Positions 1-61,939 of a stretch of 64,000 nt of DNA are shown here, in pieces; the first letter of the stretch is position 1, and each line of letters starts with the position of its first letter. The notes beneath the pieces are model-generated. The model was not told the origin of the DNA. It saw nothing but the letters and a program-made list of their open reading frames with translations, and made no database searches. Position numbers and translations under genes: made by a program. Source of the stretch: Monocercomonoides exilis PA203. Its lineage: Eukaryota; Protista; Preaxostyla. The stretch is taken from the NCBI GenBank assembly GCA_001643675.2, contig LSRY02000003.1:2418001-2482000 (forward strand), read 5' to 3'.

Positions 1-40
1 CATATGTCGCAGCTATGATGATAACGTGCTGCGCACATAT

Positions 41-5849: not shown

Positions 5850-5899
5850 ATTTATGTGCAAGTGACGGTAAAATCGAAGAAAGTTGGGGAGATGGCACA

Positions 5900-35908: not shown

Positions 35909-37009
35909 TCCTTCTTTTTTTATCTTCCTTTTTTATCTTTCTCGTATATATATTTTTTCCCTTTCTGTTTCTTATTAACTTTGCCTTTTTCTTGTTCTAT
36001 CTCAAACTCTCCCCTATTTCCTCTTTCTTTTTTAATTTACTCATTTGTTCTGATTATCTTTTTATTCTCCTTCTTTATGTTCTTCTTCTTCTTCTTCTTC
36101 TTCTCGCCCTTCTTCTTTGCTTTCGTTCAAATTTACTCTTTTAATTTTTTTATTAAAAAAAGTGGTTAACGTTTGTGTTTTTTGTATCTAAGCATTTTCA
36201 TCACCTTGAGTGGTTGTATTTCTAACGATAAAAAAATTTTAATAAAAAAAATATAAATTTTTAAAAGATTGAATTTTCCACTCATTGATATTGACTGAGT
36301 TTTTGCGATGATTCTCTTAATTGCAAATGTCGTGTGATGTTGGTCTCTACTTTTATCTGGCTGCAAATGAACCATTCTGAGCATCGAACCAGACTTCTCA
36401 TTTCTCTGGCCATTCTGCTTTCGGGGCAATGGTTGTTTAAGAGCAACTCCTTTTCTTTGCTAAGTCATATTCTTCCTGTTTTTTCTTTTCTTTTTTTTAT
36501 AAAATATATCAGATTTAACCACTATCTTGAATATTTTTTAAACATTTTCATTTTCTTCTGTAAGATTTTGTTTTTACATAATCATTTTTCTTTCTTATTT
36601 AAAAAGTTTTTTTCTTGAAACAAGTTTAATAATACTCCAATCTTTATTCAATTACTGATATTTTCTATTTGCTTAGTGTCTCTTATACACGTGTTGTTAT
36701 GTAACTCTTTAACATATTGCATCATTATTAGAGCTAACTTTTTTTTTCCAAATGTGAATCCGATGAAATTGCACAAGCAAAAAAAAAAAAAAAAGATAAT
36801 AAAGTTGAACTTCTATTTCTCTAAACATTTTTCGTTTTCATTGTAGAAAACATTTGCAATCATATAATAATTTGGATAAAAAATGTATTGAAGGAATAGT
36901 GAAAGGATTTGAACAGTTTCATTTTCTTAATCAAAACAAACCACAAAAGTTCTAAAATAAAATCAAGCAGTTTTAAAGCATCTAATTCATTATTCGATTT
37001 CCTTCTCGT

Positions 37010-38331
37010 TCCATCTCTCACTTCCATCACTTCCTTCACACTCACTCAACCCATTCACCTCAACCACCTCTTCCTCTTCTCTCTCTTCCACCAACACCAA
37101 TGTCAATTCAATTCCTTCATTCTCCCTTCACTCATCCCTCTCTATCCACTCAACCATCTTCCTCCACACCCACAACCCCATCGATGGAGCCATTCTCCCC
37201 AACCTCAACAGCCCCTCCACATCCATCTCTGCCTTCAACACCTCTTTCCTCAGCCATACACGTTCTTCCTCTAATGATGTTGTAAGATATAACGGATCCG
37301 AAACTCAAAAAAAGGAATTAAGTCGATTGCCCTTTACTGATTTGAATAGCTATCTCTTTGAGTGGTGTGAATGGAATGATTCAACTGGTGGATCAAGTCG
37401 TGGAGGTGCACTTTATGTCAACTGCAGCAATGCCAATCTCACAATCACTTCTTGCTCATTCAACAAATGCTCATCTAGTAATGGTCATGGAGGAGCATTG
37501 TATTGTGAAAGTTTGTTGAAGATAAACATCACCAAATCAAATTTCTCAAACTGCTCTGCAGTTCATGGAGGTGCTGTCAACACATGGTATCCGCAATCAA
37601 ATTCTATTTTTCACATTTCGGAAAATAGAGTTGAAAATTGTTCAATAACATATTGGTGCGGAACCGGTTGGTATTTCTTGTTAAATGACTTGTCTGCATC
37701 TGGTCAATTCTTGTTCACAAACTGCAAGTGCATCGCAAATTCTGGTGGTGATGCTGCTGGCTCTCTCACGTTTCATTGGCCTCCGAATAACAAGCCCAAC
37801 CTGTTTTCAATCGTTGAGTGTCAGTTCATCAATAACAAATTAACTTCATCATCCACTTATGGCGGAGCCGGAATATACTTTGATGGAACTTACTCTTGGA
37901 TGAATGGAATAAAATTCATCACATTCTGTTTCTTCGATGGCAACACTGCCAAAAATGGCAGAGGAAACGATGTCTTTTTCAATGGCAGCAGTATCACCCA
38001 ATCTCCATTTGAGAATTGTGGCTCAACAACTCCAACAAAAAGAGTGTGGAATAATGGAACAGCAGACAATGCAGTGTACAATGGCTGGCTCCCCCTCGTT
38101 GCCCAGAACAAAATCGTTGCCAGCAATGGAACTGATGCTGATGCCTGTGGCAGACCCCAACAGACCCCATGTGCCACCATCGAGTATGCCCTCACCAGCT
38201 TCATTTCTCTCCTCCAAGATGCATCTCTCACCCTCCTTTCCTCAACATTTGTTCCAACTCAAACACTCACATCCAGCGCAGTTGACACAAAAACAACAGG
38301 AAATAATGACTTTTTTCTGATTCTCATATAA
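37010..38331 (+). pseudogene. Beta-helix family copy F: ATG-less open cassette, strongly mosaic
   Basis: Linker homology from ~37010, core open to AVDTKTTGN. The ORF-track start is TTG. Confidence 0.75.
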
Positions 38332-39639
38332 ATTCTTTCATCTTCAAATTTTGAATATTTTCCATATCTTTGAAAATTTCTTGAGGTTTCATCTTCTTTT
38401 CAATTGAAGTATATACCACTTATTTTTTCAAAATCCTAACCATCCGCTCAGATAAAAACATTTCTTCAAAATCTCTTCATCTATTTTCTCCTTTTCATCA
38501 AAGGCAAATTCAGCTTGTTGCTTTACATCATCTATTTCATCTCTCAAATAGCATTTCTTCAATCATATAAGAAAGTTCTTCAATTATTATATTTTCATCA
38601 GCTTTCATGTTTCAACATGCTTGTATCCGATTCGCTCAACTATCTCTTTGAAATTTCCCTTCAAATATGCCTTTTCCTCAAAATTGCTTTCTTTCTTTGT
38701 TTCATCTTCAATGGCTCATTAAAAGTGTATCACATTGAGAAATCTCTCAAAGATCATCCACATTATAATTTGTTCCAAATAACGTCTTCTGCCCTGCTCC
38801 TTCTATTTTCTGTGAATTCTTTCAACTTCCAAAATAATAATTCAGATTTAATTTCTATTTTTTATTGTGCACTTTGTGGTCGGCTTTTCTCGATAGGATT
38901 TAGAATCATTTCCTTTGTAAAATAATTTCTGATGATATTCCGTGATTGAATGAATATTTCTTTTGAATTTCCAAATTGATGCAGAAGGCGAAGCCTTCCT
39001 TCCAATCTGAGAGTTGTTGAATGAAATGAAAAAAACAGTTTAATTTTTGTTGTTCATCGAAGAAAGCGTTGAAGAACATTTGAATGAAAAGACAAATTTT
39101 TTTCTTGTCAGAATAATGAATGAAACATAAAATAATGGCGTATGCGGTGAATGGACGCTGAGAGGAAGAATTGTGAATGATAAAATTGTTAGTTCAATTT
39201 TGCGATGCACTGATTGTACAGCTTAAATGCATCAGGAGGTCGATGACCTGATCCAATGCCAAGTGATTGAAAACGGCATTGAAGAAGCAGAAGATAATGG
39301 TGAAGATTTAGCAGTTCGTTGGAAAGAAGAAGAAAAAGAAGAAGAAAAAAGAAGAAAAAAGAAGAAAAAAGATGAAGAAGAAGTTATTGAGAGATGAACA
39401 ATCAGTCAAATAACATTTCTGAAGAAGATGATGAAAATGACTTGTATGATGTTGTCGGATGATGAAATGTCACATTTGATAAGTTGACTTCGAAAGGAAT
39501 ATAAAACCCCAATAACAAATAATATTGGCCAATTCGCATTTATTTGTCTGTGAAGATCAAATCTTCAGTTCATTTGCAAACTTTGAGTGGTTTCATTTCC
39601 CTTCTCTTCAAAAACAAAAAATAATGATGTTTGTCCATT

Positions 39640-40277
39640 GGCTCTGAAAATACAAAAAGCATCAAATGAAAATGCAAGTGAAGATGAATGCGAAGACGAA
39701 GAATCAGCAGAAGAAAAAGAAGATTGAGAAAAAGAAAAAGAGGTCGAAGAAGGTGAAGAAGGTGAAGAAGGTGAAGAAGGTGAAGAAGAAGAAGAAGAAG
39801 AAGAAGAAGAAGAAGAAGAAGAAGAAGAAGAAGAAGAAGAAGAAGAAGAAGAAGAAGAAGAAGAAGAAGAAGAAGAAGAAGAAGAAGAAGAAGAAGAAGA
39901 AGAAGAAGAAGAAGAAGAAGAAGAAGAAGAAGAAGAAGAAGGTGAAGATGAATAAGAATAAAAAGAAGAAGGTGAAGATGAAGAAAAAGAAGAAGAAGAA
40001 GAAGAATAAGAATAAAAAGAAGAAGGTGAAGATGAATAAAAAGAAGAAGAAGAAGGAGAAGAGGTAGAAGGAGAAGGAGAAGGAGAAGGAGAAGGAGAAG
40101 GAGAAGGAGAAGGAGAAACAAAAGTTGTTCAGTTGATGATTGAAGGAGTTGAAACAAACGACTCTGGGAAAAAGTTGATTGGCGCGTGCTCATCAATCGC
40201 TGATTCCATTGGAGAAGATGCTGCACAGTTTGAAATGTCTGTTAATGAGGAAGAAGGTGAAGAAGAAGAAGAAGAAA

Positions 40278-40321
<44 letters not shown>

Positions 40322-42150
40322 AATATTAAACAGTTGAATATGCCAAATCATATTCAATCTCATTCAATCTCATTCAATTCTGCTCTGTGTGTGACTGCCA
40401 CAGCATGTCGAGCAGTTTCTGTTGCCTCATCTGAAATCCCACAACAAGCAGTCGATTGCAACAAGACACCAAACAGCACAACAAATTGTCCCTCCTCTCC
40501 TCTCCTCTCCTCTCCTGAGTCTGTCAACACATTCACCCAGCCACAAGCAGATTGTCTTCCTCATTCCCACCGTTCAGAAACAGCCTGCTCCTCTCCCACC
40601 AAAAAAACTGCACCCAGCCAACCTGCTGCTCCAATCACATTCAGACAATTCAAATGTTCGCATGAAAATAATATCAATCGCTTCGCATTCCAATTCCGAG
40701 CAGGCGCTCCTCAAAAAATGCTTGTTCCATCATCTCCTGCAGCACCTGCGCCGCAGACTCGCCCCCAATCCAAAACTCGTCTGAATCCTGCAATTAATTC
40801 GCATCTCCCGCTGCCTCAGGCGCTTCTCCCCGGCTGCCCATCGCTTCCTCTCAGCAGCAGCGTCTTCCCCATTTTTTGAGGCATTTCCCCTTCAGCAAGA
40901 AGATTCTCGATGCCTTCACCAAAGCCTGCCTCTGCCACAATCAACAAATCTCACTCAATTGAGGCCGGCTGGCCAAAAGCAGCAAAACAAGCTCCAGAAA
41001 ACATAACACAGAACAAAACCAAACTCTCTCCAGATTGCACTCAAAATGCATCGCTTCTCCAACGACAAGCAAAATCGCCCCAACAAAATCGGCCTTCCTG
41101 CCTGAAACGTCCCATCCAGTCACAAACATTCGCTGATCGCCATCCAAAAATAAAATAAAAATAAAAAATAGTTGCATTTCTCCGCTTCTTCGCATCTCAC
41201 ACTCCAAAAAGCTGCTTTTCTCGTTCATCTGCCCCTCTTTCCCCATTTTGTTTGCTTGTTTGTTTGTTTGTTTGGCCTCTCAATCCATGCTGCCCCTCTT
41301 TCCTCATATTTTCTTCTTCAACAGCAAAATAACAGCCCTCGCAAATTCGTGCTGAATCGCCCCGCATGCGGAGCAAGTGACCCCCCTGCTGCCAGACTTG
41401 CCTTCCCAGCACATCTCCTGCCGTGCCCCAACAAAGGCAGAGCATTCACATTCGAACTGAAATTACCCTGCAGCAATCGCCTTGTCGCTGGCACTTGTGC
41501 TCCAACAGCATCTGCAGCTCCAAGCACCCGCTCTATTCCTGTCGCTTTCATCGCCACAACACTCCTTTCCAACAAAGAGCTCTCAGCAACCGCTGCAGCT
41601 GCACCCCGCCGGTTCCAATGACAGAATCTCCCTGATCCAACGTTGCAGGCACAGCCCTCAATTTCGAACTCTTTTGCAGCAGGTCTAATGGCATCATCCA
41701 CTTGCGCCTTAGCAGTGATTCCATCGTCCAGATACATCGCCCTTATGCTTCTCCAATTCGCATGCCCCAAGGGCTCGTTTCCCCCTCCCCGAGGTTAATG
41801 CGATCCAGAACAACTCTTTCAAACATTTCCTTTGCGCGCTGCTTGCTCACCAATCACAAAAACGAATCAATCCTTAAGGGGAAGTTTTTTCAATAATGAT
41901 TTTATAGCATTAATCGAACTATTCATTGCGTTGCCATACACAGCTGGCTCACTGCCGAGCGCACAAATTAATTCTTCACAAGAACGCAAACCCAAACCCA
42001 ATTCAAGGATGGCCACGCTTTGCTTTGCACCCATGTTAGAGAAAAAAGTGGAGCAATATATCTCCAAAGCCAATCCCCTTGCCGGCGATACAAATAGCAT
42101 CAGTGACGCCATGACAGAGGAAAGAAGACGAAGACAGCACATTCAATGAG
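39640..42150 (+). pseudogene. Degenerate acidic/Pro-rich coding-like region, family unassigned
   Basis: Elevated GC and fragmented ORFs (40133-40879, 40910-41158, 41172-41621) with no recognisable domain. Confidence 0.25.
39740..40120. repeat. (GAA)n microsatellite (~39782-39940) with GAAGAAGGT and GAAGGA variant arrays
   Basis: Directly visible; (GAT)n follows at ~40279-40320. Confidence 0.95.
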
Positions 42151-45100
42151 ACAGAAGAATTTCAAGCATAAAAGCTTCTTCTCAAGCCCAAAAGTGAAAA
42201 TGCTCTCATAGAATTCATTCGTTGCACGAGTAATGCAGTTGTAGAATGTAATGATTTCCTTGTTGCGATAAATCAGCATCCGGATCTGCGTTCTCACACA
42301 AAAACAACCAAATAAACTGCTCAAACAAATAGAAGCTCATACCACAAAAACGGCGTATCTTCGCTGCACGTAATGATTTGTGCTCTTGCAAAAGGAACTG
42401 GTTTGATGATAATACATATTTTCGTTAGGAGGCAGCTCGTTTCGGGCAAAACTTGCCCATCTGAACTTCTTTAAAGTTTTCCTTTTACACACTACTTCCG
42501 CGCACTTGCCTCGCACAATACAATTTTGTTCATTCAATTCTATCGCAATGCAATGCTGCGGTCTGGTTTGAATCATCAGCCAGCTGATTTAAATCATTCT
42601 GCACAATGCCCGATTCGTTCCAAGGTTCAGCGCAATCAGCTTTCACGAAAATATATTGGCGCAAATTTTACATTTCTAGACAAACAGAGAAAAGCATATT
42701 ATGCGCGTAAAACGACTCAAAACTCGCATAAAAATTCAATTAAGTGTTTCGTATTGGATTATGGTTATAAATGCATCATTATCGAGCATAGCATGGGAGC
42801 TATTCGTGGTAATATTTGTTAATAATTATCAGCAACAAATGAAAAGCAAATATTGTTTTCGGAATCAATCGAACATTCGTTATGAAAAAAATGGATTATG
42901 ATCATCAAAATGCTTTTGTATTGCATTTCCAGTGGCTGTTCAGAATGGTGTCTATTTCGTTGGTTATGCCGAAGCAACTCGTTTTAAAGCTGGATGAAGT
43001 ATTAATATTTGTGTTTGCGAGTTATTTTTCATGCTTTGTTGCACATGAATGGAAACAATTCATCTACAGAATGAATGATGCGTCAGCGCAAAGCGCTGCA
43101 CCTGTACAGCAATAGACGAAGGACAATGTTACTCTACAAATGTTGCTAAGGTTCGCATTGCAATGGGCCCGGAAGAAAGATTTGAAGATGGAAAGTCTTT
43201 ATGAATGGTAATTATTCAGAATATTGGAGAATACGAAATTAAAGAGGGGGACGAAAAATATCCATTTGAACATACGAAAATAATACTTTTTTCGATAATG
43301 ATGAAGTTATGTTTGTACGATGATCCAGATGGATATGCTTCGTTTTGGTCATCATATATTTTCAAGCTAGATTGAGCAAAGAGAAAGAGAAAAAGAAAAA
43401 CAGGGAAATGTGGAAAAGAAGAAATTAAAGAATTGTTTGAGCAAAATGAAAAGCTCAAACACTCAAGCCAGTCTAGCACGACCATTGAAAAGGGATAAAG
43501 GCAAATGGATAACTGCAAAGAAAAATAAAGGAGGCAACAATAACAAAAGGAGTACGAATAAGAAAAAATGAAGGAAGGGAACTACCATTTGCGAATGACA
43601 AAACAAGTGGTTGAAAAGGCGACGAATTTGATTACAGTCAATGAGCAAGGCAAGGGAATGTTTTGTGTTTGCCTGTACCAAACAAAGACAGCAAGCAGCA
43701 ATATCTGCTGAATCGACTGCTTATTTCATTCATTTGTTCTTGACTTGTTTGCCTCAGCTGCAAATCCAATAAAGCAACAGGGCTTACAAACGCAGTTGTC
43801 TGGCAAAAACAAAAGGACTTATTTTTGCAGAGCGAAACAACGGAACACGAAGCAAGTTTGAAGGGGTAAAAAATCCGCCTTCAAGACAGCCACGAGTTAC
43901 AAAGCATGGCAGAGTATCCCAACAGAGAAATGATTCATTACAACAAATAGACATGAAAATGAAAAAGGGAAGAATTGCCAAAAGAGACGGATGACAGGGC
44001 ATCACAAGAGGAAAGCAAAGAAGAAAATGAAAATATTTGCCAACTTTGTGATGCAAATGTGAAAGAAAAATGGAAAAGATGAAGAAAACTGCGGAAAAGT
44101 GAAAGACTTGAGATTGATTCTAAATGAACAGGAAACATCGAAGCAAAACACGATAAAGCGAAATGAACGCGAGCGTGGCAGCGACAAAAAAAGAGAAATG
44201 AGCAGAAGAGATATTTCAAGCAAACGAAAAACAGCACCAAAGTGAATCAAAAACAAACAAGAAAAGAAAAGAAAAAAAATGCCAGTTTGGATTTGATTGA
44301 AAAGAAAAATGCGGCAGTGTCGAACAGTTGGCTCATCGTTGCTATCGTCCTTTTCTTGTCCTTCTTCAGATCAACTGAGTGTGCTTCAAAGTGTATCAAA
44401 TGCTTGCTGCTTGTTGTTGCATGCTATTCTTTTCATCTTCACAGGCTTTTTTGTTTTGTCTCGTTGCTTTCCACTTTTCTTTTCCAGAAAAAGCTCAATC
44501 TTGTGTTGCTCTCCCCTGCTCACTTCCGAAGCATTGATATTTATCAACGCTTTTTGCCTCAAACTACATTGGCATCGAAAGGTGTTTGCACAACTTAAGC
44601 TTCGTGCGACAATCACATGCTAATAATAAGTGATGGCGAGGGTTATTCCACTTCCCCCATTCCTTCGTTTTCTGCTTCCTTTTCCTCCTCATTTTTATCA
44701 AACTTCTGCGACATCGTCTCAAGTATTCCACCTAACAAATCACATTTCTGTTGTTTGTGATGCCTTTCATCTTCGTCATCCTCACTCACTTCCATGGATA
44801 TCAAAAATATTGTTATTTTCTTCCCATCAAAATCCATCAGATTCAATGACGGGCCTTATCTCCTGTGACTGTTCAGGAGCACAACACTTATTTTCAATCT
44901 GTCGCAACCAGCGGTCGAGTCTGTGTAGGAATGGAAGTGATGCTATTTTAAGCCAAGAAAAGTCGATCAGGGCGCACAACAAAAAACAGAGAGAGAGAGA
45001 GAGAGAGAGAGACGATTCTTTCTTTTTCATTTGGAGGTTGAAGGGTATGCAGAAGAAAAAGAAGGAGGAGGAGGAGAAGCTGTTCAGAATGAGTGATTTG

Positions 45101-45426
45101 ACAGTGCCTTTCGAGAGATTTTGCAACTTCATGTGCATTCAACGAGTCGCGAAAAATAAAAAGAGAAGACGAACTGAATTTGAAGGAGAAGTACATTCAA
45201 ATGAGAATTTACGAAAGCGGGGCATGAATAGCATGCAGACAAATTGGAATGGAAAAAATGAAGAAATTATAATTTATGTGAAACTACAAGATATCATCGA
45301 AGAAATACTCTTTTGAAGAAAGGAAAAAGATAATACCTTCGCACTGAGGGCTGACTCGAAATTGAAGAAACAAAATTAGAGAAACTTATGAGGATATATT
45401 TTTTCTGCGTTGATGTTATTCTTTTT

Positions 45427-46760
45427 CTAAGCAAATAGTAGCATATATGCCATTTGAAAATGGGATGAAAGCTCATGAATTTGGCAATGATACGGAAAAT
45501 ATTCAAAAATTAAAAGAAATAATGATAGAATATTAACTGTTTTATATGATGAAAATAGAAGGAATAATAAAGAAATCAGACAAATTTCATCATTTCCAGT
45601 GATTTTTGTGTCAACTGCACAGAAAGTGAGTGTTTGAGTTGGAACAAATGTTGAGGAAAGGAGGGTGAGAGAGGCGTCTTGGAGGAGGGAGATGAAGGCG
45701 TTGAGGGCATACTCGATGGTGGCGCATGGGGTCTGTTGGGGTCTGCCACAGGCATCAGCATCAGTTCCACCATTTGCAACGATTTTGTTCTGGGCAATGA
45801 GTGGGAGCCAGCCATTGTACGCAGCGTTATCAGCAGTTCCTGCATTCCACACTCTTTTTGTTGGAGTTGTTGAGCCACAATTCTCAAATGGAGATTGGGT
45901 GATACTGCTGCCATTGAAAAAGACATCGTTTCCTCTGCCATTTGTGGCAGTGTTGCCATCGAAGAAACAAAATGTGATGAATTTTATTCCATTCATCCAA
46001 GAGTAAGTGACATCCAAATAGATGGCAGCTCCTCCATAACTGGCAGATGCAGTCAGATTGTTATTTATAAATTGGCAATCATTAACCAAAAACTGAGTTG
46101 GTTTATTTTGTGGGGGATCATTAAATGTGAGAGAACCAGCAGAATTGCCCCCTGTATTAGCAATGCACTTGCATTTGGAAAACAAGAATTGAAAATTTGT
46201 TGGAATTCCTTCAAGCGCAAAATACCAACCCGTTCCACACCAGTATGTTATCTTACAACTTTCCACTCTATTTTCTGAGAACGTCCAAACAGAATTCGTT
46301 TGAGGATACCTGATGCAATTTGCTCCTCCATGGCCAGCCGAGCATCCCGTGAAATTTGATTTTGCCATATTTATTTTCAACAAGTAATGACAGTATAATG
46401 CCCCTCCACCACTATCACTTCCTGGACAATTGCAATTGAAAAACGAACAAGAAGTGATTTCGAGATTGGCATTTGTGCACTCGACATGAAGTGCACCGCC
46501 ATTATCACTTCCACTATTTGAATCATTCCATTCACACCATTCGAATCTGTGGCTGTTCTCATCAAATGAAGTCAGTCTTCCAGGTTTCGCTCTTTGAGAT
46601 TCAGATCCGATATGCACGACAGCAGCATTTGGTGAAGAGCGTGTTTGGTGAAGAAAAGAGGCATTGAAGGCAGAGAGAGAGGTGGATGGGCTGTTTAGGT
46701 TGGGGAGAATGGCTCCATCAATGGGGTTGTGAGTGTGGAGGAAAATGGTTGAATTGGAGG
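45427..46760 (-). pseudogene. Beta-helix family copy G: ATG-less open cassette; homology ends ~45590 (AVDTKITGN)
   Basis: Runs from STIFLHTHNPIDGAIL through the core. The ORF-track start is TTG in non-homologous sequence. Confidence 0.75.
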
Positions 46761-47427
46761 ATTTTGTTAGTAAGAAGAACACACAAAAATGAAAGAAGAA
46801 AACCAGATAAAAATGGAAAATCAAATATCTCGGTATTTGTTTATTTATTTATCTTCATCATTCTCAGCTTCAATCAACTCACCAACTCATTGCATGCTCT
46901 TCAAATTCTTCTTCCACTTCATCATTCACTTCATCTATTTTGAATTTCTTCAAATTTGATATCTACGTCAGAGATCGTGAATGAAATGAAGAAAAAGATG
47001 AACTTTTGCAACCGAAGGAAATATTCAGAAATAAGAAAGAGAGGAAGAAGAATGAAAGAAGACGAAAGAAGAGGAGAAAGAGAAAGAGAAATAAGATTCT
47101 GATTTTTAGGATAATTGATAAATGGAAATGAGATTGAGAGGGTTGAAGAGATTTTTGTGTTAAAGAGAGAAGATGTTTCGAAGAGGAGATTCGAGTTGAA
47201 TGTTGAATTTGGGAAGAAAAGTATTTGGATAAACGGAGGGTAATTTTGAGAAGCGATATAGCAAACAAGGATGAATGACAAGATTCAAGAAATAAACTAT
47301 CAAATTTGAGAGAAAAGAAGGAATGAGAGAAGAGGAGAAAATGGAGAAAGAGATAATAACAGGAAAAGAGAAGGGACATGAAAAGACTTTTCATTGGAAA
47401 AATTAGAGAAGGAAAGATAAGCTACGG

Positions 47428-48355
47428 TCAGCCATTATATTCAGCATTATCAGCTGTTCCTTGATTCCACACTCTTTTTGATGCTGTTGTTGAGCCACAA
47501 TTCTCAAATGGAGATTGAGTGATATTACTTCCATTGAAAAACACGTCGTTTCCTCTGCCATTTGTGGCAGTGTTGCCATTGAAAAAACAAAATGTGATGA
47601 ATTTTATTTCATTCATCCAAGAATAAGTATTCCTAAAAAACATTGCAGCACCTCCCCATGAAGTTGAATTTGATGTCAATTTGTTATTTATGAACTGACA
47701 ATCATTGACCAAAAACTGACTCGGTTTGTTTTGTGGAGGATTATTGAATGTGAGAGAACCAGCGGAATCGTTACCTGAATTTGAGATGCACTTGCATTTG
47801 GAAAACAGGAATTGACCGTTTTCTGGAAAAGCACCAATATAAAAATACCAACCAGTTCCGCACCAGCTAGATATTGAACAATTTTCGACTTTGTTTTCTG
47901 AATGGTAATAAGCAGAATTGTGCTGTGGATTTGTTGTATGAACTGCTCCTCCATGAGCAGCAGAACAATTTGTGAAATTGGATTTTGTAATATCAATTTT
48001 CAACAAACTATTACAGTATAACCCTCCACCTTGCCCCTCTCCGGTGCATGAACAATTGTTGAATGAACAAGAAGTGATTTCGAGATTTGCGTTTGTGCAA
48101 TTGACTTTAAGCGCACCTCCATCACTTGATCCACCAGTTGAATCATTCCATTCGCACCACTCAAAGCGATGGCTACTTGCATCGAATGAAGACAGTCTTC
48201 CAAGTGATTTTCTGTGAGTTTCAGTTCCAATATGAACGATAGGTGCATTTGATGAAGATCGAGTTTGGTGAAGAAAAGAAGCATTGAAGGCAGAGAGAGA
48301 AGTGGATGGGCTGTTGAGGTTGGGGAGAATGGCTCCATCGATGGGGTTTTTGGTG
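47428..48355 (-). pseudogene. Beta-helix family copy H: ATG-less open cassette
   Basis: NPIDGAILPNLN to ADNAEYNG*; downstream flank is shared with copy E. Confidence 0.75.
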
Positions 48356-49713
48356 AGCAAAAGAATAAATCAATAGAAAAAGAATAGAGTTATATTTGTG
48401 AAGCGTGCATTCACAATGATGATTATGAAATAGATGAGAGATTGATCATTATTTGAATCTGAATATGATAATTGCTTTTTTTTCGGGGTTTTCTTTGGAA
48501 AATTGTTTTTGAATGAGTGAGTGATCCAGCAAGAGAAGAAGAAAAAGATTTTCATTAGAGTGTGAATTATTTTGTCGAAAGAATGAGTGCTGTTTGAAAT
48601 TGGAATAGTGTGTTTGCTCAGAGCATTTGTGTTTGTTGAGCAGTTTCATTCTGTTTGCCTTCTGAACGATTGTGCTTTCTGTGGTAAAGGCATAAAAAGA
48701 TTGATAAAAAAATATCTGTTCTTTGTTTTTCTTTTTCTTAGTATTTGTTGCACAATAAAATAATTTGAAATGAGAATTTTTGTGCATGAAATGGTGAGCT
48801 TGTGGTTTGCCATTGTCGAATTTTGAAAGTGTTGTTAATTGTTGTTGTTCTCGAAACGGAGTTATTTGTTTGTTCTGATTTTTTCAAAAATGTTATTTTT
48901 CTTGGAGCGTGAATAATTGTGGATATCTTTGTGAATATTCAATCCTCGCAACAATTATTGATATTTATTTGAATTAGTGTTTTGATGTTTTTATTTTTAT
49001 TTTATTTTTTTTTTTAATAAATAAAATAAATTATTGGCAAACCCATACCGCCATTGGTGATTGTGATTTCACTGCTTCTGCAACATCCATATTAAAGACA
49101 GAAAAATACTTCTTTTTATTGAATTTTTTTTTTTTCAATAACAAAAAACACCAAAACAATCTAAAATACTGATTGCTTATGAATTCAATTTTTGAATATA
49201 TTGTTTTTCATTTTTTTCCTCATTTTTGAAATTCTATTTTGTCTGTCAAACATTTCGGTTTGAAAATTCATTTTGAATATTTGGAAATGAACACTTGAAA
49301 TTGATAACTTCTTATCAATAGACCATATCCTTTCTTTCATCTCAAGCATTGACTTTAACTGTAATAACTATATTTCAGACATTTTAATATGGATTGATAA
49401 ATAAATGGGAAAAAAACTTGCAATAATCCACACCCCCAAATTTAAGTCATTTCAAAAATAACAACAAAAATTATTGAAGTTAGAAATTTAATGATTAAAT
49501 TTGGTATAATAATCTTTATCATAATTTATTATTCAAAATTGATAAACTATTTGGGGAAAAATATGGACTTCCAAGCTTTTGATGAACAAATCATAAATAA
49601 TTTGTTTCACTAATAACTATTTGAAACTTGTCAGATTTCAAAATAAATTGGATTTTTTTATCAAAACATCTGCGTCACCTTGGAAAAGGCGAGACAAAGT
49701 CATTCAGTGCACG

Positions 49714-49717
<4 letters not shown>

Positions 49718-49776
<59 letters not shown>
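49718..49776. repeat. Poly-T tract (mirror poly-A at ~58934-58986)
   Basis: Directly visible. Confidence 0.95.
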
Positions 49777-50654
49777 CCTGAGAAAAACCAACAATTTTAA
49801 AAAATTTTGCTAGGAAAAGGATAAAACATTTACCAATAATTCAAAATTCTCATGACAAAAATTTTTGCACAATTTTTAATCAATTAACTTTAATTAAATA
49901 TTAATTTATTACTATTCTTTTTCACACTTTCACATAAATTATAACTTTCACTAAAAATGTGCAACAAGATTGTTTAATTTGTTTGTTAATGTTTTTGAAG
50001 AATTGTTTTCTGTTTTGCATTTTTATTAATATTCATTTTTGAAAAGAATAAAACTTCAGTGTGTATTAATATTGGAAAAAATATTATCTACAATAGACAT
50101 ATTTCATGATTCTCCATATTGATTCTTGTAATTTGCAATAAAAAATTTATTCATTTTTGTTAAGAATAGTTTGTTTCGACAAAAATAAAAATATTGCGAG
50201 TTTTAAAAAATAAATTTGAATCAAGGAAATATTTTCCATGAATAAAGAACAAAATTCTTTCTTGTTACATATATTAAAAATGATTTCAAAAATTATAAAT
50301 TATTTTGTTTTCTGTATCCTAAATTTGTTTCTTTGTTTTCATTTGAAAGTTGCTCCTCTCCTTTTTGTGAAAGTTTCTTTGGATGAATAAAAAAAATGCA
50401 CGTCATTGCTATTCATTTTGATGGTTCTGATTAACTTCCTCGTTTTTTAACATTCATCATCGTAATCATCACTATCTCATTCTTTTTCTTTCTTTTCTTT
50501 ATTGAATTCTTCGTCTTCTCCTCTTTATTATTTCCCCTCCTCCTCTTCTCATCTTTTTTGCTGTTTCAATTTCTATTTCTTTATCTTTATCTTATTCTTA
50601 TTCTTATTCTTATTCTTATTCATATTCTTATTCTTATTCTTATTCTTATTCTTT

Positions 50655-52240
50655 TTCGCAAGTCGCACTGCCTCTGCACTTGCCCTCCGCTCCCTTTTCC
50701 TCCTCACTTCCACGCAGTCCATTCACGTGAACAGCTCCAGCTCCTTTTTTCTGCGGATCCCGCTTCTTTAAGGTTGCACATCTCTTCGTCGCTTTCCACA
50801 TCCCGCAACGCCATCACATCCTCCCCGTTCACCATTTCTTCCAGCTGGCTTATGTTCGGAAGCAGCACCTCCGTCTCCCAGCTCCGCAGGATGTGATAAC
50901 ACCCGTGCACCACACAAAACACAACTTTCTTTGAGTATTACTCACAGTGAAGCAGCTCCAGCATCCGTCCCACATCCAAATTCGCAACTCCAAACAATTC
51001 TCTCGTTTGATGTTCATAATTATCTTCCTCTTTCTAAACACCACTCTTCCCCTCCTCTCTTCCGTTTCCACATCCTCCATTCCCTTTTTTTTCATCATGA
51101 ACATCCATCCTTCCTCACCACATTCTTCTCCAGTTCTTCATTCAATTCCTTCAATGTTTTCTCAGCATCCACTCCACACTTTGCTCTTCTGCTTTTCCTC
51201 TGCCATCTCCTTGGGATGCACAAGTCTCTGATCCTGCTGCTTCCTCTGCCGACGCTTTCGCACGTGGAACCCCACAGTAATCACCACCACTATTACACAC
51301 ATTGTACTCACTTCAATATGCAGTATGATCGTCTTCCCATTCAGCTCAAGCAGGCTCTGCCCCCTGCCTATACCTTCCTTTCCTCTTTCCAGTGTAATTG
51401 CTGCTGTCTCGTTGAACTTTTTTCCTTCACTTACGTCATCCTCCCCTGTCTCCTCCCCTGTTCTCCACACTCCCCCTTCCCCGCCTCTCCGCTCCTCCAC
51501 AGCCAGCTCCTCGCTCAAATACACCACATTCGCCAGCACCTCCTCATCTGCCCCTCTCTCCTCAATCACCCCCGCCCGATTCTCCCGAACCCCCGCCGCT
51601 CCGTGTTCTGCCCTGTGCTCTCAAAACTGTATGTCCTCACACGCTGGCCCCCATCTGCCCCACGCACAATTATCTGGAAGTACAGCCCGCACTGCACCAG
51701 CTCCTGCACCACGAACTCCAGCCGCGCCTGCCCCCAGCTGCATGTCCAGCTGACGTTCGAAAGCACGGAGCAGAAACACATACCAATTGCGCCTGCTGTT
51801 TAACCATCCTGTTCAGCTCGCATCTGCTCCCCGGACCAAACATATCGCTCACTGCTGTGCTCCCCACCTCCGCACGCTCCCTCCTCTGTTGGAACACCTG
51901 CATATCGATCTGTCTCAGCTCATCCCCAATCGCCACACACTCCTCAACCACCAGCACGCATCTCTCTTTCCTCCTCAATCTCACATTTCCATTTTCAAAT
52001 GTCATTGAAAATATTAACAACTGTGACTCAATCACCACAAACCCTGCTGCTGCTCTGTGCTTTTCAACATCTCCTTCCTGCTAAAAAATTCTCTCAGCAC
52101 CGCGCAGGCAACAACACGTTCTATTTTCTCCGAACCGTTATTCGCTTCTGATCCTCAGCCTCTAAACTCCTGCCATTGTCTAAGTTTTGATAAGCACATC
52201 TTTTGTCCGCTCCATGTCTATGTGAAGAGCGTGCTTTAAA
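50655..52240 (-). pseudogene. GC-rich degenerate gene fragment, possibly the C-terminal part of a type I membrane protein (mirror at 56465-58050 +)
   Basis: Frameshifted ORFs. One encodes hydrophobic IILHIEVSTMCVIVVVITVGF followed by basic RKRRQRK, a TM/stop-transfer pattern. Confidence 0.4.
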
Positions 52241-53646
52241 GGTTGAAATAAGTTTGTAAAAAAATATAAGAAAAAAATGAAAATATAAAAATTTTTCACA
52301 AACGATAAATACAACAATTTTTTAAAGATGAAAATTTATATAAAGACATTTTTTAAAATTAAAAATACAAACATTTGAAAAAATGGACTGTTGACTTAAA
52401 TCACTTCAGCGACAGACAGTGACGTGAATTCTGTGGTATATATTCTTTAAAGAAATGATCACGACACAACCCATTGTTTCATAAAAAATTGAAAATGAAC
52501 GTATGAAAAAAAAAAATTAAAATCAATTATTAAACAAAAATAAAAATATTTTACCACTTATCAATTATTCTTTATGTTATCAGTTTCAAACAAAAAAACA
52601 ACATAAAAATGAGTGAATAAAATATTTTTTCAGTCATATCGCGTCACTCCAATAATGTTCACGTCAGAAGGCATGCGACGCAGATGTTTATTCATATCTG
52701 TAAACAAACGTCATTGACATACAAGCAAAATGTTTTGTAACCTTTCATGTATTTAGAAAAATAAACACTTTTCTTTCAAATTATTTGATCACAGAAAGTT
52801 TATCTTGGATGCATAATTCTTCAATGAAAATGCCTGAAGCCAAATATTTGGCATAAGTGTAACAAACTACCTCTTTCAATTAAACAACTTTTTTCGTTTC
52901 AACAACATATTAATCAATAACATAAAAAATTAACACATTTGGGTGGAATAACTTTTTGAAATGTCAACGAAAAATTTCAAAAAAGAATTGTTGTGATCTA
53001 TACCATAATTAAATCCTTGTTTATATCTTTTTCGTTAAAAACGTTAATGATTGTGATTTGAAAGTTTATTGATGTTCTAATTACTCAATACTTGAAATGT
53101 CACAAATAAAGTTTGAAATTGAACAATCTTTATCATTATTTATGTTGTATTTTTTCTGTTTATATTGATGGAATTCTTGGAGTCACATTCAGTTCGTTTA
53201 TAAAAATGCCAATTCAATTATTAATAAACGAATGCATTGGAGCTCGAACAAGTTATACTTGTTTTCATATTTTTTTTAACAAAAATTGTTGTTTGTTAAT
53301 TGAACTTCTTTTTTTCTGACTGTTTTTCACACTGAAATACGGGCAATTATTTTTTAATATTTGTGAATAATATTGGATCAACGTTTTCTGAATATGTTTG
53401 TTGTTGTTAATTACGCTGTAGTGAAGTTGTCACATTGAGTTTTGAAATTTTTTCAAAATAACCAAAAAAATGATCAGCAAAAGTGATTTTGACTTTTTTG
53501 TTTCTTCATAAAGTTTCAATGAAAAGAACAAACAGTTGTTTTCAGAATGAAAACATATAATGAAATTTTTTGGAAAGAAGAATGAAGATATTTTGAATTT
53601 TTCTTGTGATATGAAAAATACAGTAATTCAAAATTCTCATTCAATC

Positions 53647-53678
<32 letters not shown>

Positions 53679-54555
53679 GTTAAATTTAGAAAGACAATTT
53701 AATACAAATCCATCACTGCAAACAGAAAAGCAATCTAACAACGCAAATAATATATTTTCTTTCTCCTTCAATCTCACCTTTTGCCTCTCATACTCCTTTT
53801 CAGCCTCTTTTTCTGATCCAATATGCAATAGAATCAAAAGAGGATCTCTTTGAATTATGCTATATAATGTAATATCAATCAGAGAAGTATTCAAAAATGT
53901 GGGTTTGAATAAAAAAGCTGTCGATTAGAGGAGGTTGTATCAGTTTGAGGAAGGAAGAAGGTTCATTTCGTCAATGAGACACTTCATGTTCTCCGCAGTT
54001 AATGTTCTATCCACAATTCACTGAAGCGAATTTTTTACGTGAAAAAGTTAGGAAGAATGATGTACATGAAAGACTCAGAGCAAGGCATGTTCGCAGCTGT
54101 CTCTCATAACAAAGTTGGTCATACTCAAGGTGCAACTTGGAGGATACGCTTGTTAAGCTGGAAAAGCTGGAGATACATTTTTCTGTTGTTGAAGTTAATG
54201 ATTCGCAGGAGCTTGGTTTCGTTCAGTCAGATTGAGCCTGTGAAGAAGATGAGTCGAACTTCCAAGAAGTCTTTTTCGATAAAGAAAATGGAATAATCAT
54301 TCAAAGGCATGCGCATCAAAGGTGAGACGAGGTTGACAGGAGGAAAGAAAAGATAACTGAGAAGTCGATGAATGGATATTGAAGATCTCGTGGAGAGAAA
54401 TGAGGAGAAGGCGGAGAAGAGGAAGTTGTTGAGGAGGAAGATGAGGAAGATGAGGAAGATGAGGAAGATGAGGAAGATGAGGAAGAAGGAGAAGGAAATG
54501 ATGTTGATCGTAATGGTTGTGTTTGTGGTTGTAATTATGGTCAGAGTTTGTCACT

Positions 54556-55285
54556 TAAGGTAATGGTGGAGGTTGAGCCATTTCCTGTGATTTTAGTGTC
54601 AACAGCATTGAATGTGAGTGTTTGAGTTGGAATATATATTGAAGTTAGGGGGGTGAAAGAGGCGTTTTGGGTATCTGTCATGCGAACAAGAGCGAATTCG
54701 ATTGTTTTGCATGGACTGAGTTGTGTGATTCCGCAGAGATCGGTGTTTGTCCTATTATTTGACACGATTTTATAAGTTGTTATGATGGGGAGCCAAACAT
54801 TATATGCATCGCTATCTGCGGTTGCTGCATTTCACATTATTTTTGTTGGATTTATTGTGTCATACTTATTGAATGAAAATTGGGTGATGTTGCTTCCATT
54901 GAATTAGACATCATTCCATCTTCCATTTTTGGCAGCGAAGCCATCCAAGAAACAGAACGTGATGAATATTACACTATTCATTTTAGTGAAAGTGTTTGTG
55001 CAACACAGGGCGGCTCCACCATTGGAAGTTGATGAACTTGTCAATTTATTATTGATGAAGAGACACTCAACGATAAAAAACATGTTGGGCTTGTTATTCG
55101 GAGGTTAATGAAATGTGAGAGAGACAGCATAATCACCATATGAGTTTGGAATGCACTTGCATTTTGAAGATAAACATTGAGCACATGTTGGAAAATCAAC
55201 AATGTTAAAATGCCAGCCAGTTCAACACCAGTTTGTCATTGAACAACTACCCACTCTGTTATCTGAAAACGTTGAATTAGAAGTG
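54556..55285 (-). pseudogene. Beta-helix family copy I: decayed, in the inverted-repeat spacer
   Basis: Homologous to the 3' half of the core (GW.F, KCKCI, GRWNDV*, TDLCGITQLSPCKTIE), with in-frame stops. Confidence 0.85.
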
Positions 55286-56464
55286 GATGGCGATCAAGCT
55301 GACAATTCACTCATTTATCTACTGTCAAGAAACTTGAAAAATTGTATTTTGTTTTTTCAGCATTTTTCAAAAATTTCTAGATCATGAATGTTAAACCTTT
55401 GTCTTTTAGAATTCAGTGACATTTTAGAATCAACAGTATGTCATCGAACATTGCTCTCTCATGATTATATTGTAAGGCATTTTGTTATGATTGATCTTTG
55501 AAGGGATAATACTTAATTTACAGAAGTTATTGCGATATTTTATATTTCAGTAATAACAACATAAATAATGATAAAGATTGTTCAATTTCAAACTTTATTT
55601 GTGACATTTCAAGTATTGAGTAATTAGAACATCAATAAACTTTCAAATCACAATCATTAACGTTTTTAACGAAAAAGATATAAACAAGGATTTAATTATG
55701 GTATAGATCACAACAATTCTTTTTTGAAATTATTCGTTGACATTTCAAAAAGTTATTCCACCCAAATGTGTTAATTTTTTATGTTATTGATTAATATGTT
55801 GTTGAAACGAAAAAAGTTGTTTAATTGAAAGAGGTAGTTTGTTACACTTATGCCAAATATTTGGCTTCAGGCATTTTCATTGAAGAATTATGCATCCAAG
55901 ATAAACTTTCTGTGATCAAATAATTTGAAAGAAAAGTGTTTATTTTTCTAAATACATGAAAGGTTACAAAACATTTTGCTTGTATGTCAATGACGTTTGT
56001 TTACAGATATGAATAAACATCTGCGTCGCATGCCTTCTGACGTGAACATTATTGGAGTGACGCGATATGACTGAAAAAATATTTTATTCACTCATTTTTA
56101 TGTTGTTTTTTTGTTTGAAACTGATAACATAAAGAATAATTGATAAGTGGTAAAATATTTTTATTTTTGTTTAATAATTGATTTTAATTTTTTTTTTTCA
56201 TACGTTCATTTTCAATTTTTTATGAAACAATGGGTTGTGTCGTGATCATTTCTTTAAAGAATATATACCACAGAATTCACGTCACTGTCTGTCGCTGAAG
56301 TGATTTAAGTCAACAGTCCATTTTTTCAAATGTTTGTATTTTTAATTTTAAAAAATGTCTTTATATAAATTTTCATCTTTAAAAAATTGTTGTATTTATC
56401 GTTTGTGAAAAATTTTTATATTTTCATTTTTTCTTATATTTTTTTACAAACTTATTTCAACCTT

Positions 56465-58050
56465 TAAAGCACGCTCTTCACATAGACATGGAGCGGACAA
56501 AAGATGTGCTTATCAAAACTTAGACAATGGCAGGAGTTTAGAGGCTGAGGATCAGAAGCGAATAACGGTTCGGAGAAAATAGAACGTGTTGTTGCCTGCG
56601 CGGTGCTGAGAGAATTTTTTAGCAGGAAGGAGATGTTGAAAAGCACAGAGCAGCAGCAGGGTTTGTGGTGATTGAGTCACAGTTGTTAATATTTTCAATG
56701 ACATTTGAAAATGGAAATGTGAGATTGAGGAGGAAAGAGAGATGCGTGCTGGTGGTTGAGGAGTGTGTGGCGATTGGGGATGAGCTGAGACAGATCGATA
56801 TGCAGGTGTTCCAACAGAGGAGGGAGCGTGCGGAGGTGGGGAGCACAGCAGTGAGCGATATGTTTGGTCCGGGGAGCAGATGCGAGCTGAACAGGATGGT
56901 TAAACAGCAGGCGCAATTGGTATGTGTTTCTGCTCCGTGCTTTCGAACGTCAGCTGGACATGCAGCTGGGGGCAGGCGCGGCTGGAGTTCGTGGTGCAGG
57001 AGCTGGTGCAGTGCGGGCTGTACTTCCAGATAATTGTGCGTGGGGCAGATGGGGGCCAGCGTGTGAGGACATACAGTTTTGAGAGCACAGGGCAGAACAC
57101 GGAGCGGCGGGGGTTCGGGAGAATCGGGCGGGGGGTGATTGAGGAGAGAGGGGCAGATGAGGAGGTGCTGGCGAATGTGGTGTATTTGAGCGAGGAGCTG
57201 GCTGTGGAGGAGCGGAGAGGCGGGGAAGGGGGAGTGTGGAGAACAGGGGAGGAGACAGGGGAGGATGACGTAAGTGAAGGAAAAAAGTTCAACGAGACAG
57301 CAGCAATTACACTGGAAAGAGGAAAGGAAGGTATAGGCAGGGGGCAGAGCCTGCTTGAGCTGAATGGGAAGACGATCATACTGCATATTGAAGTGAGTAC
57401 AATGTGTGTAATAGTGGTGGTGATTACTGTGGGGTTCCACGTGCGAAAGCGTCGGCAGAGGAAGCAGCAGGATCAGAGACTTGTGCATCCCAAGGAGATG
57501 GCAGAGGAAAAGCAGAAGAGCAAAGTGTGGAGTGGATGCTGAGAAAACATTGAAGGAATTGAATGAAGAACTGGAGAAGAATGTGGTGAGGAAGGATGGA
57601 TGTTCATGATGAAAAAAAAGGGAATGGAGGATGTGGAAACGGAAGAGAGGAGGGGAAGAGTGGTGTTTAGAAAGAGGAAGATAATTATGAACATCAAACG
57701 AGAGAATTGTTTGGAGTTGCGAATTTGGATGTGGGACGGATGCTGGAGCTGCTTCACTGTGAGTAATACTCAAAGAAAGTTGTGTTTTGTGTGGTGCACG
57801 GGTGTTATCACATCCTGCGGAGCTGGGAGACGGAGGTGCTGCTTCCGAACATAAGCCAGCTGGAAGAAATGGTGAACGGGGAGGATGTGATGGCGTTGCG
57901 GGATGTGGAAAGCGACGAAGAGATGTGCAACCTTAAAGAAGCGGGATCCGCAGAAAAAAGGAGCTGGAGCTGTTCACGTGAATGGACTGCGTGGAAGTGA
58001 GGAGGAAAAGGGAGCGGAGGGCAAGTGCAGAGGCAGTGCGACTTGCGAAA
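56465..58050 (+). pseudogene. Mirror copy of the GC-rich degenerate membrane-protein fragment
   Basis: Matches 50655-52240; the difference noticed is a G-run length at ~57130. Confidence 0.4.
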
Positions 58051-58933
58051 AAGAATAAGAATAAGAATAAGAATAAGAATAAGAATATGAATAAGAATAA
58101 GAATAAGAATAAGAATAAGATAAAGATAAAGAAATAGAAATTGAAACAGCAAAAAAGATGAGAAGAGGAGGAGGGGAAATAATAAAGAGGAGAAGACGAA
58201 GAATTCAATAAAGAAAAGAAAGAAAAAGAATGAGATAGTGATGATTACGATGATGAATGTTAAAAAACGAGGAAGTTAATCAGAACCATCAAAATGAATA
58301 GCAATGACGTGCATTTTTTTTATTCATCCAAAGAAACTTTCACAAAAAGGAGAGGAGCAACTTTCAAATGAAAACAAAGAAACAAATTTAGGATACAGAA
58401 AACAAAATAATTTATAATTTTTGAAATCATTTTTAATATATGTAACAAGAAAGAATTTTGTTCTTTATTCATGGAAAATATTTCCTTGATTCAAATTTAT
58501 TTTTTAAAACTCGCAATATTTTTATTTTTGTCGAAACAAACTATTCTTAACAAAAATGAATAAATTTTTTATTGCAAATTACAAGAATCAATATGGAGAA
58601 TCATGAAATATGTCTATTGTAGATAATATTTTTTCCAATATTAATACACACTGAAGTTTTATTCTTTTCAAAAATGAATATTAATAAAAATGCAAAACAG
58701 AAAACAATTCTTCAAAAACATTAACAAACAAATTAAACAATCTTGTTGCACATTTTTAGTGAAAGTTATAATTTATGTGAAAGTGTGAAAAAGAATAGTA
58801 ATAAATTAATATTTAATTAAAGTTAATTGATTAAAAATTGTGCAAAAATTTTTGTCATGAGAATTTTGAATTATTGGTAAATGTTTTATCCTTTTCCTAG
58901 CAAAATTTTTTAAAATTGTTGGTTTTTCTCAGG

Positions 58934-58991
<58 letters not shown>

Positions 58992-60345
58992 CGTGCACTG
59001 AATGACTTTGTCTCGCCTTTTCCAAGGTGACGCAGATGTTTTGATAAAAAAATCCAATTTATTTTGAAATCTGACAAGTTTCAAATAGTTATTAGTGAAA
59101 CAAATTATTTATGATTTGTTCATCAAAAGCTTGGAAGTCCATATTTTTCCCCAAATAGTTTATCAATTTTGAATAATAAATTATGATAAAGATTATTATA
59201 CCAAATTTAATCATTAAATTTCTAACTTCAATAATTTTTGTTGTTATTTTTGAAATGACTTAAATTTGGGGGTGTGGATTATTGCAAGTTTTTTTCCCAT
59301 TTATTTATCAATCCATATTAAAATGTCTGAAATATAGTTATTACAGTTAAAGTCAATGCTTGAGATGAAAGAAAGGATATGGTCTATTGATAAGAAGTTA
59401 TCAATTTCAAGTGTTCATTTCCAAATATTCAAAATGAATTTTCAAACCGAAATGTTTGACAGACAAAATAGAATTTCAAAAATGAGGAAAAAAATGAAAA
59501 ACAATATATTCAAAAATTGAATTCATAAGCAATCAGTATTTTAGATTGTTTTGGTGTTTTTTGTTATTGAAAAAAAAATTCAATAAAAAGAAGTATTTTT
59601 CTGTCTTTAATATGGATGTTGCAGAAGCAGTGAAATCACAATCACCAATGGCGGTATGGGTTTGCCAATAATTTATTTTATTTATTAAAAAAAAAAATAA
59701 AATAAAAATAAAAACATCAAAACACTAATTCAAATAAATATCAATAATTGTTGCGAGGATTGAATATTCACAAAGATATCCACAATTATTCACGCTCCAA
59801 GAAAAATAACATTTTTGAAAAAATCAGAACAAACAAATAACTCCGTTTCGAGAACAACAACAATTAACAACACTTTCAAAATTCGACAATGGCAAACCAC
59901 AAGCTCACCATTTCATGCACAAAAATTCTCATTTCAAATTATTTTATTGTGCAACAAATACTAAGAAAAAGAAAAACAAAGAACAGATATTTTTTTATCA
60001 ATCTTTTTATGCCTTTACCACAGAAAGCACAATCGTTCAGAAGGCAAACAGAATGAAACTGCTCAACAAACACAAATGCTCTGAGCAAACACACTATTCC
60101 AATTTCAAACAGCACTCATTCTTTCGACAAAATAATTCACACTCTAATGAAAATCTTTTTCTTCTTCTCTTGCTGGATCACTCACTCATTCAAAAACAAT
60201 TTTCCAAAGAAAACCCCGAAAAAAAGCAATTATCATATTCAGATTCAAATAATGATCAATCTCTCATCTATTTCATAATCATCATTGTGAATGCACGCTT
60301 CACAAATATAACTCTATTCTTTTTCTATTGATTTATTCTTTTGCT

Positions 60346-61272: not shown

Positions 61273-61939
61273 CCGTAGCTTATCTTTCCTTCTCTAATTT
61301 TTCCAATGAAAAGTCTTTTCATGTCCCTTCTCTTTTCCTGTTATTATCTCTTTCTCCATTTTCTCCTCTTCTCTCATTCCTTCTTTTCTCTCAAATTTGA
61401 TAGTTTATTTCTTGAATCTTGTCATTCATCCTTGTTTGCTATATCGCTTCTCAAAATTACCCTCCGTTTATCCAAATACTTTTCTTCCCAAATTCAACAT
61501 TCAACTCGAATCTCCTCTTCGAAACATCTTCTCTCTTTAACACAAAAATCTCTTCAACCCTCTCAATCTCATTTCCATTTATCAATTATCCTAAAAATCA
61601 GAATCTTATTTCTCTTTCTCTTTCTCCTCTTCTTTCGTCTTCTTTCATTCTTCTTCCTCTCTTTCTTATTTCTGAATATTTCCTTCGGTTGCAAAAGTTC
61701 ATCTTTTTCTTCATTTCATTCACGATCTCTGACGTAGATATCAAATTTGAAGAAATTCAAAATAGATGAAGTGAATGATGAAGTGGAAGAAGAATTTGAA
61801 GAGCATGCAATGAGTTGGTGAGTTGATTGAAGCTGAGAATGATGAAGATAAATAAATAAACAAATACCGAGATATTTGATTTTCCATTTTTATCTGGTTT
61901 TCTTCTTTCATTTTTGTGTGTTCTTCTTACTAACAAAAT

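Follow-up and report, generated by a model that had tools for sequence, protein, structure and literature searches.

Copy F, an open frame on the largest chromosome of Monocercomonoides exilis, is a mosaic of short DNA patches that are common to many sister copies of one gene family. The window, i.e. the whole stretch of 64,000 nucleotides analysed here (C25:2418001-2482000, in a genome of 82.3 Mb and 101 contigs), contains eleven copies of this family according to a self-comparison (Table 1), and F sits in a region crowded with them. The mosaic is very probably the product of ectopic, mostly non-crossover gene conversion on a fragment that encodes the head of a receptor-kinase-like protein, combined with the membership of its 3' part in a palindrome arm.

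Table 1. Family copies, shared tracts, patches and palindrome parts (window positions unless a contig is named; nearest relatives refer to a genome-wide search)
Feature	Position	Strand	Description
Copy A	3632-4742	+	sharer of the 37704-37949 tracts
A/L024 patch	4436..4941	+	two-sided, 118 differences in 506 bp
Copy C	9133-10040	-	
Copy B	10891-12311	-	
Copy D	15164-16280	+	sharer of 38080-38143
Copy E	20698-21637	-	sharer of 37311-37384
Copy F, open frame	36961..38331	+	456 codons, no ATG near 5' end
Copy F, core	37135-38322	+	from self-comparison
Nearest relative	37150-37450		87%, inverted pair at C25:1.63 Mb (best 40 of 383-613)
E-type tract	37311..37384	+	51 polymorphic sites, at most 1 mismatch, p<3e-4
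Nearest relative	37451-37756		90% C47:1548038; 88% L008; F2 outside best 40
L008 tract	37541..37596	+	56 nt exact; 41 concordant polymorphic sites, global p 0.01
L008 itself	C25:2111148-2112293		
A-type stretch	37704..37949	+	exact 42, 91 and 89 nt with A and mirror copy L024
High-identity left arm	37757..53151	.	holds F, G and H
Nearest relative	37757-37950		97% A and L024; 96% L003 and F2 (best 40 of 383-613)
L003 tract	37840-37943	+	104 nt exact; overlaps A-type stretch
Micro-patch, F vs F2	37869..37887	+	8 substitutions within otherwise identical arms
Nearest relative	37951 onward		F2
G-type tract	37953..38052	+	100 nt exact with G and G'; also in F2
D-type tract	38080..38143	+	64 nt exact with D; also in F2; weakest of five
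L013 tract	38110..38195	+	86 nt exact; 42 sites, global p 0.008
Copy G	45574-46752	-	left arm; sharer of 37953-38052
Copy H	47429-48355	-	
Spacer	53152..55551	.	2.4 kb, holds degenerate copy X (22 in-frame stops)
Copy X	54445-55288	-	degenerate
Right arm	55552..64000	.	continues past the window to window-equivalent 71802, site of F2
Copy H'	60346-61271	+	
Copy G'	61948-63126	+	right arm, mirror of G

The original prediction described F as a four-way patchwork of its paralogues A, D, E and G'. The four exact matches claimed with A, G' and D were all reproduced by direct comparison with 0 mismatches: F 37757-37847 and 37861-37949 correspond to A 4195-4285 (91 nt) and A 4299-4387 (89 nt), F 37953-38052 to G' 62757-62856 (100 nt) and F 38080-38143 to D 16056-16119 (64 nt). 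The match of 74 nt between F 37311-37384 and E 21394-21467 has its single mismatch as a reverse complement, because E is on the minus strand, but the same comparison as written on the plus strand gives 55 mismatches and was ruled out. The count of four partners was too low. F also has significant tracts in common with L003 (104 nt exact), L008 (56 nt), L013 (86 nt) and, most of all, a copy beyond the window, F2 (L002), with which it shares 332 exact nt in the core followed by ~15 kb of near identity. L013 lies on contig C17 within an open frame of at least 1965 codons. Over the whole core, the identity of other copies to F is 69-83%.

Mosaicism was tested on up to 25 full-length cores, comprising window copies and loci from the rest of the genome. 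The observed PHI statistic was 0.756 vs 0.842 +/- 0.005 under permutation (0 of 1000 permutations as low); it was also significant in each half of the core, and third codon positions alone again gave 0 of 1000. Run-length tests with GENECONV logic, in which the order of sites was permuted or, separately, per-site conservation was held in place, were also positive, the D tract in the pairwise comparison only. The four exact tracts with A (two), G' and D contain 54, 47, 39 and 31 polymorphic sites, about half of them third codon positions, and the runs of concordant sites are 2-3 times the expected length. These runs extend over 54 sites between F and A (global p 4e-4), 63 between F and L003 (global p <2e-4), 39 between F and G (global p 0.018, in-place p 3e-4) and 31 between F and D (pairwise p 8e-4, global p 0.13, p 0.0018 with conservation in place), the last not being significant alone once corrected for many pairs. 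With conservation in place, the longest run expected is 14-18 sites, and p is at most 3e-4 for A, G, E, L003, L008 and L013.

Trees built from successive blocks of the core conflict with each other. The sister of F is L027 in 37150-37450, L008 in 37451-37750 and in that block only (support 100/99), and F2 in 38076-38300 (98/92), and in 37751-37950 F falls in an unresolved group of 10 rows (80/98) where L003, A/L024 and F2 are nearest. A does not differ from its mirror copy L024 over the first three blocks, but the two fall in separate 100/100 clades in the last. The AU test, in which the groups come from trees already inspected for other blocks and are not fully pre-specified, rejects F+L008 in 37751-37950 (p 1.4e-5) and in 38076-38300 (p 3.7e-5), F+L027 (p 1.2e-5) and F+F2 (p 0.016) in 37451-37750, and A+L024 in 38076-38300 (p 1.3e-5). 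The windowed synonymous difference is 0.00-0.12 within tracts and 0.4-0.8 beside them, with extremes of 0.00 and 0.84. Between F and A it is 0.44-0.64 up to 37686, 0.31 at 37687-37761, 0.00 at 37762-37839 and 0.41 after; for F and G, a value of 0.84 is followed by 0.07. PHI, run lengths, block trees with AU tests and synonymous windows agree that the nearest relative changes over short distances, synonymous sites included, as the original prediction had it. These data support the view that duplication and divergence does not predict the shifting nearest relative of F.

A search of the genome returned 383-613 first-look candidates, of which the best 40 were scored, and closer donors are possible beyond these 40. 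Among them, the 5' 600 bp of F have no close donor (best 87-90%), which makes this part an old mosaic and not a recent patchwork, and the recent events lie in the 3' part of the copy. The nearest relative in 37451-37756, at C47:1548038, lies within an open frame of at least 2407 codons. For no whole patch was a 100% donor present among the best 40 of the 383-613, exact identity being limited to sub-tracts. We infer the direction of the individual transfers, which are presumed to be non-reciprocal.

F2, the closest relative of F beyond the window, is found at C25:2488371-2489543 on the minus strand and is 88% identical to F overall. The two copies belong to a palindrome with arms of 16.3 kb, in which 36891-53151 pairs with 71802-55552 (window-equivalent). 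F is the outermost part of the left arm, in which high identity sets in inside the gene at 37757. Homology of the arms at the family level (~79%) already starts at 36891: F and F2 show 180 differences in 36897-37756 (~21%), then 8 at 37869-37887, where F is of the A/L003 type and F2 of the G/G' type, and near identity after. Outside 36897-37756, the arms differ by few clustered substitutions and by single-base indels. A simple repeat at 39782-39941 shows 18 indel differences between the arms at 39782-39849. The 3' third of F had been read as G-like and then D-like; these tracts are real, but this part of F is primarily a palindrome arm near-identical to F2. Since F2 has the same G- and D-type tracts, they predate the origin or the most recent homogenisation of the arms.

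Inverted near-identical arms around a unique spacer are what is expected of a palindrome maintained by conversion, and their near-identity, seen in one strain, fits both ongoing homogenisation and recent origin. The boundary at 37757 may be the end of an arm-to-arm tract, a fold-back junction of inverted paralogues, or the edge of a later replacement of 36897-37756. Like the palindromes of mammalian sex chromosomes, this one has multi-kb inverted arms that are >99% identical outside few patches, a unique spacer and amplified family members. Unlike them, its arms measure 16 kb (there up to megabases), its identity boundary lies inside a family gene, and its arms are punctured by patches from ectopic paralogues. 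Rozen and colleagues are said to have found in 2003 that arm-to-arm gene conversion preserves the identity of the sex-chromosome arms.

Another palindrome, which has its centre near window 1168 and arms of at least 6.8 kb, holds copy A in its right arm. It was observed across window 1-8000 and C25:2412340-2420336 (L032), A and L024 facing apart, and its central 62 bp (1169-1230) contain 45 differences between arms. A comparison of 800-1540 with 52900-55800 gave no similarity, and a shared element at these two palindrome centres is not supported. From 1231 to 8000 the A/L024 arms are identical except for the 506-bp patch, which is the cleanest conversion tract in the region. Two-sided patches in an otherwise identical background are present in both palindromes (A/L024 4436-4941 and F/F2 37869-37887). 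Within the larger patch, exact sub-tracts connect A with L026/L047 (194 nt) and L024 with L008 (180 nt) and L051 (144 nt); among the best 40 of 383-613 candidates there was no complete donor for either version, the best reaching 90% and 93%.

A mechanism based on break repair would explain these observations. A double-strand break or gap in one copy would be repaired by homologous recombination with other copies as template, giving ectopic conversion tracts of ~20 bp to several hundred bp. The arm from 37757 would be kept near-identical by arm-to-arm conversion, or would derive from a recent fold-back duplication, and later ectopic patches (37869-37887, possibly the whole of 36897-37756) would then make the arms differ. 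Three layers make up the pattern: two-sided patches of ~20 to ~500 bp, multi-partner mosaics, and arms that are near-identical except at patches. Karnkowska et al. 2019 (PMC6759080) report that M. exilis lacks end joining and encodes homologous recombination repair, from which we infer that ectopic repair by homologous recombination is the expected route. It is unlikely that replicative template switching (break-induced or microhomology-mediated, with fold-back copying) or reciprocal crossovers acted instead of short-patch conversion. Although the F/F2 identity edge inside the gene at 37757 resembles a fold-back or crossover junction of inverted paralogues, two-sided patches in identical arms need a non-crossover event or a double crossover, and crossovers between contigs or inverted copies would rearrange chromosomes. 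Both versions of the A/L024 patch have several partners, with exact sub-tracts of 144-194 nt, as might result from one multi-switch repair event, and palindromes are common around the family, the 42 best matches including at least 10 inverted pairs; as regards template switching and conversion as such, sequence alone cannot separate these routes.

The physical linkage of the F tracts rests on the published assembly, which was made by Canu on ONT reads and polished with Nanopolish and then with Pilon using 2x300-bp reads (PMC8767320). With such a procedure, polishing by Pilon or Nanopolish might have introduced the short tracts into F from paralogue reads, and the palindrome might reflect fold-back chimeric nanopore reads, an explanation that we consider very improbable. 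Tract lengths of 64-100 nt do resemble read size. Nine public runs contain part of 36900-38700, and the Logan unitigs over F measure 70-270 nt, being short because the family tangles the assembly graph; in the stretch 36000-39700, none of these 70-270 nt unitigs is seen to bridge a tract junction. However, exact matches to stretches specific to F occur in unitigs of the 2016 and 2022 DNA runs and of the 2024 RNA runs, and the 2016 DNA and 2024 RNA runs are independent data. The loose ends of the unitigs at 37757 and 37888 carry the sequence of paralogues that diverge from F there. A 2x300 bp read derived from A and covering a 90-nt tract would have ~20% mismatches in its flanks on F and hence should map to A. 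Moreover, the same mosaic is present in every copy across several contigs, F and F2 have their G- and D-type tracts in common, and unique spacers (2.4 kb with X) together with clustered substitution patches are unlike fold-back chimeras. Conversion is the reading that we retain, and it is scarcely credible that the tracts are simply the most constrained coding segments, kept by conservation and chance: conservation is indeed higher in the 3' half of the core, the longest identical runs of many pairs fall at 37870-37920 and 38100-38200 and the family dN/dS is 0.25, but the tracts hold 31-54 family-variable sites, about half at third positions, the run lengths for A, G, E, L003, L008 and L013 keep p<=3e-4 in the in-place simulations, synonymous divergence is 0 inside tracts vs 0.4-0.8 beside them, and constraint cannot yield different nearest relatives per block at 98-100% support.

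Two further observations were made in the public runs. A contig from an RNA run differs from the unique block 37478-37733 of F at 5 of 256 positions. An allele, or a near-identical copy of F missing from the assembly, could account for this variant; in a DNA run of the source strain, 37540 A>T and 38930 T>C also appear as minority bases. In the upstream flank, 36118-36766 is covered without any difference by contigs of two 2024 'synthetic metagenome' RNA runs (depth 17-40), which reflect either transcription of the flank or DNA carry-over in the library.

F is a head-only fragment of a giant receptor-kinase-like gene and is not an intact member of the TKL kinases. It lacks a start codon, a signal peptide, a membrane anchor and a kinase, and its frame ends after the head at 38331. 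Its 3' end is shorter than those of A and D and enters unrelated sequence ending ...TTGNNDFFLILI before the stop; F2 has the same 3' end. Full-length relatives carry a signal peptide ~270-300 residues ahead of the start of the homology with F, and the two long open frames on C17 and C47 that include a family core start with methionine followed by a hydrophobic segment resembling a signal peptide. A profile search against 1.84 billion representatives gave 624 hits, led by long M. exilis proteins with the F domain at the N-terminus (P0018, 2226 aa; P0025, 2581 aa), both with a C-terminal match to PF07714. F is best explained as a silent copy of this N-terminal beta-helix 'head', an interpretation that shares the very probable standing given to conversion above.

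No Pfam match was found for F, A, D, P0003 or seven other ORFs of the window. The AlphaFold model of F, obtained from a 24-sequence family alignment, has a pLDDT of 74; in residues 31-260, the value per 10-residue block is 78-94, except in single blocks of 74 and 77. Residues 1-260 align by VIA-align to right-handed parallel beta-helix proteins with Z of 14-17, and the rmsd is 2.8-4 A in most top matches (~3 A over 190-250 residues). Foldseek of the model against the PDB was weak, with no match of E below 0.14. A distant metagenomic relative matches PF20585, a pectate lyase-like adhesive domain of Pfam. The head of F is predicted to adopt the right-handed parallel beta-helix (pectin-lyase) fold. 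The structures matched by the model are tailspikes, pectate and alginate lyases and the adhesin PfbA, whereas F and the tested M. exilis proteins, unlike beta-helix adhesins and tailspikes, have no Pfam beta-helix match; a modelled likeness of fold would by itself be no proof of function for the head.

Mosaicism is not special to F, as the same pattern occurs in every copy examined. Many of the 383-613 family candidates lie at 1.2-2.5 Mb of C25. This contig carries TTAGGG repeats at its end, which places F ~92 kb from a telomere; the telomere array (L033, C25:2540434-2548433) includes a few irregular units. Of 39 aligned copies, 28 have a core without stops, and the median dN/dS of the family is 0.25 at a dS of 0.69, indicating purifying selection. 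The sequence is thus kept coding, whether through selection or through ongoing exchange with functional genes. According to PMC6759080, protein tyrosine kinases form the largest gene family of M. exilis, and unclassified repeats, suspected to be expanded protein families, make up 35% of the assembly (PMC8767320).

Other features of the neighbourhood and of the genome were also recorded. Among the 42 best matches of F, at least 10 are inverted pairs of equal score, and palindromes would thus be the usual housing of the family on C25 (e.g. 1584097/1587948, 1520566/1528510, 2121028/2127806, 2050350/2065103 and 2500278/2505456). A direct segmental duplication of 6.5 kb, 83% identical, relates 3632-10040 to 15164-21637, with two copies per unit (A..C and D..E). 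The cores at C98:3895-8892 are identical to those of the palindrome at C25:1584097-1589118, one with a 1-base indel, and this small contig may be redundant or represent an alternative haplotype. P0010, annotated as 'putative nuclease HARBI1' (764 aa), combines a Harbinger-type DDE transposase (PF01609, PF13359) with the C-terminal half of a family member, and is probably a transposon inserted in, or mis-joined with, a receptor gene. The 1050-codon ORF at 30123-33275 was considered as a relative of the family and rejected, being serine-rich, of low complexity, unrelated and without a Pfam match.

Mosaic segmental conversion with silent archives is known from the VSG genes of Trypanosoma brucei, ves1 of Babesia bovis, msg of Pneumocystis, vlsE of Borrelia and pilE/pilS of Neisseria. 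The M. exilis family resembles these systems in its many diverged paralogues, many of them truncated, without start and located towards a chromosome end, in its short exact patches with different partners, in the open frame that is kept, and in full-length relatives with a signal peptide. F itself lacks the start and signal peptide, as silent cassettes do, and patches are common to cassettes and complete genes, as seen in the 86 nt that F shares with L013 in its frame of at least 1965 codons. In contrast to those systems, the full-length genes of M. exilis are receptor-kinase-like and do not encode coat proteins, the copies are housed in palindromes, and the organism is a gut commensal for which antibody selection is not known. 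An expression site, one-way transfer into an expressed gene and switching are features of the archives, to which the M. exilis family is likened by its sequences only. Ordinary interlocus conversion, as in MHC genes, globins and plant clusters of NLR or receptor-like kinase genes, likewise leaves tracts of tens to hundreds of bp, incongruent trees and synonymous co-conversion; the scale in M. exilis is larger, with 383-613 first-look candidates on many contigs, and most of the partners seen are fragments. Our literature search found no paper on gene conversion in Monocercomonoides. F is a solid and well documented case of a process that is known in kind and undescribed in this organism.

To conclude, one tree per gene is not valid for this family, and many of its gene models are fragments, which matters for annotation. 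The results are also relevant to break repair in a eukaryote reported to be without end joining. The receptor-like TKL kinases, which are the largest gene family of M. exilis, and much of the 35% of 'unclassified repeat' appear to evolve by constant exchange of patches between complete genes and truncated copies. It is possible, though doubtful, that the hundreds of head fragments, which stay readable and sit in palindromes near chromosome ends, are a selected store of variants which feeds the ligand-binding heads of expressed receptor kinases by short-patch conversion. If true, a commensal protist would possess a system that diversifies its sensory or adhesive receptors, with a logic like that of VSG mosaics or of lamprey VLR assembly but directed at signalling receptors, and use of the fragment store would be a new case of cassette-based diversification outside pathogens.
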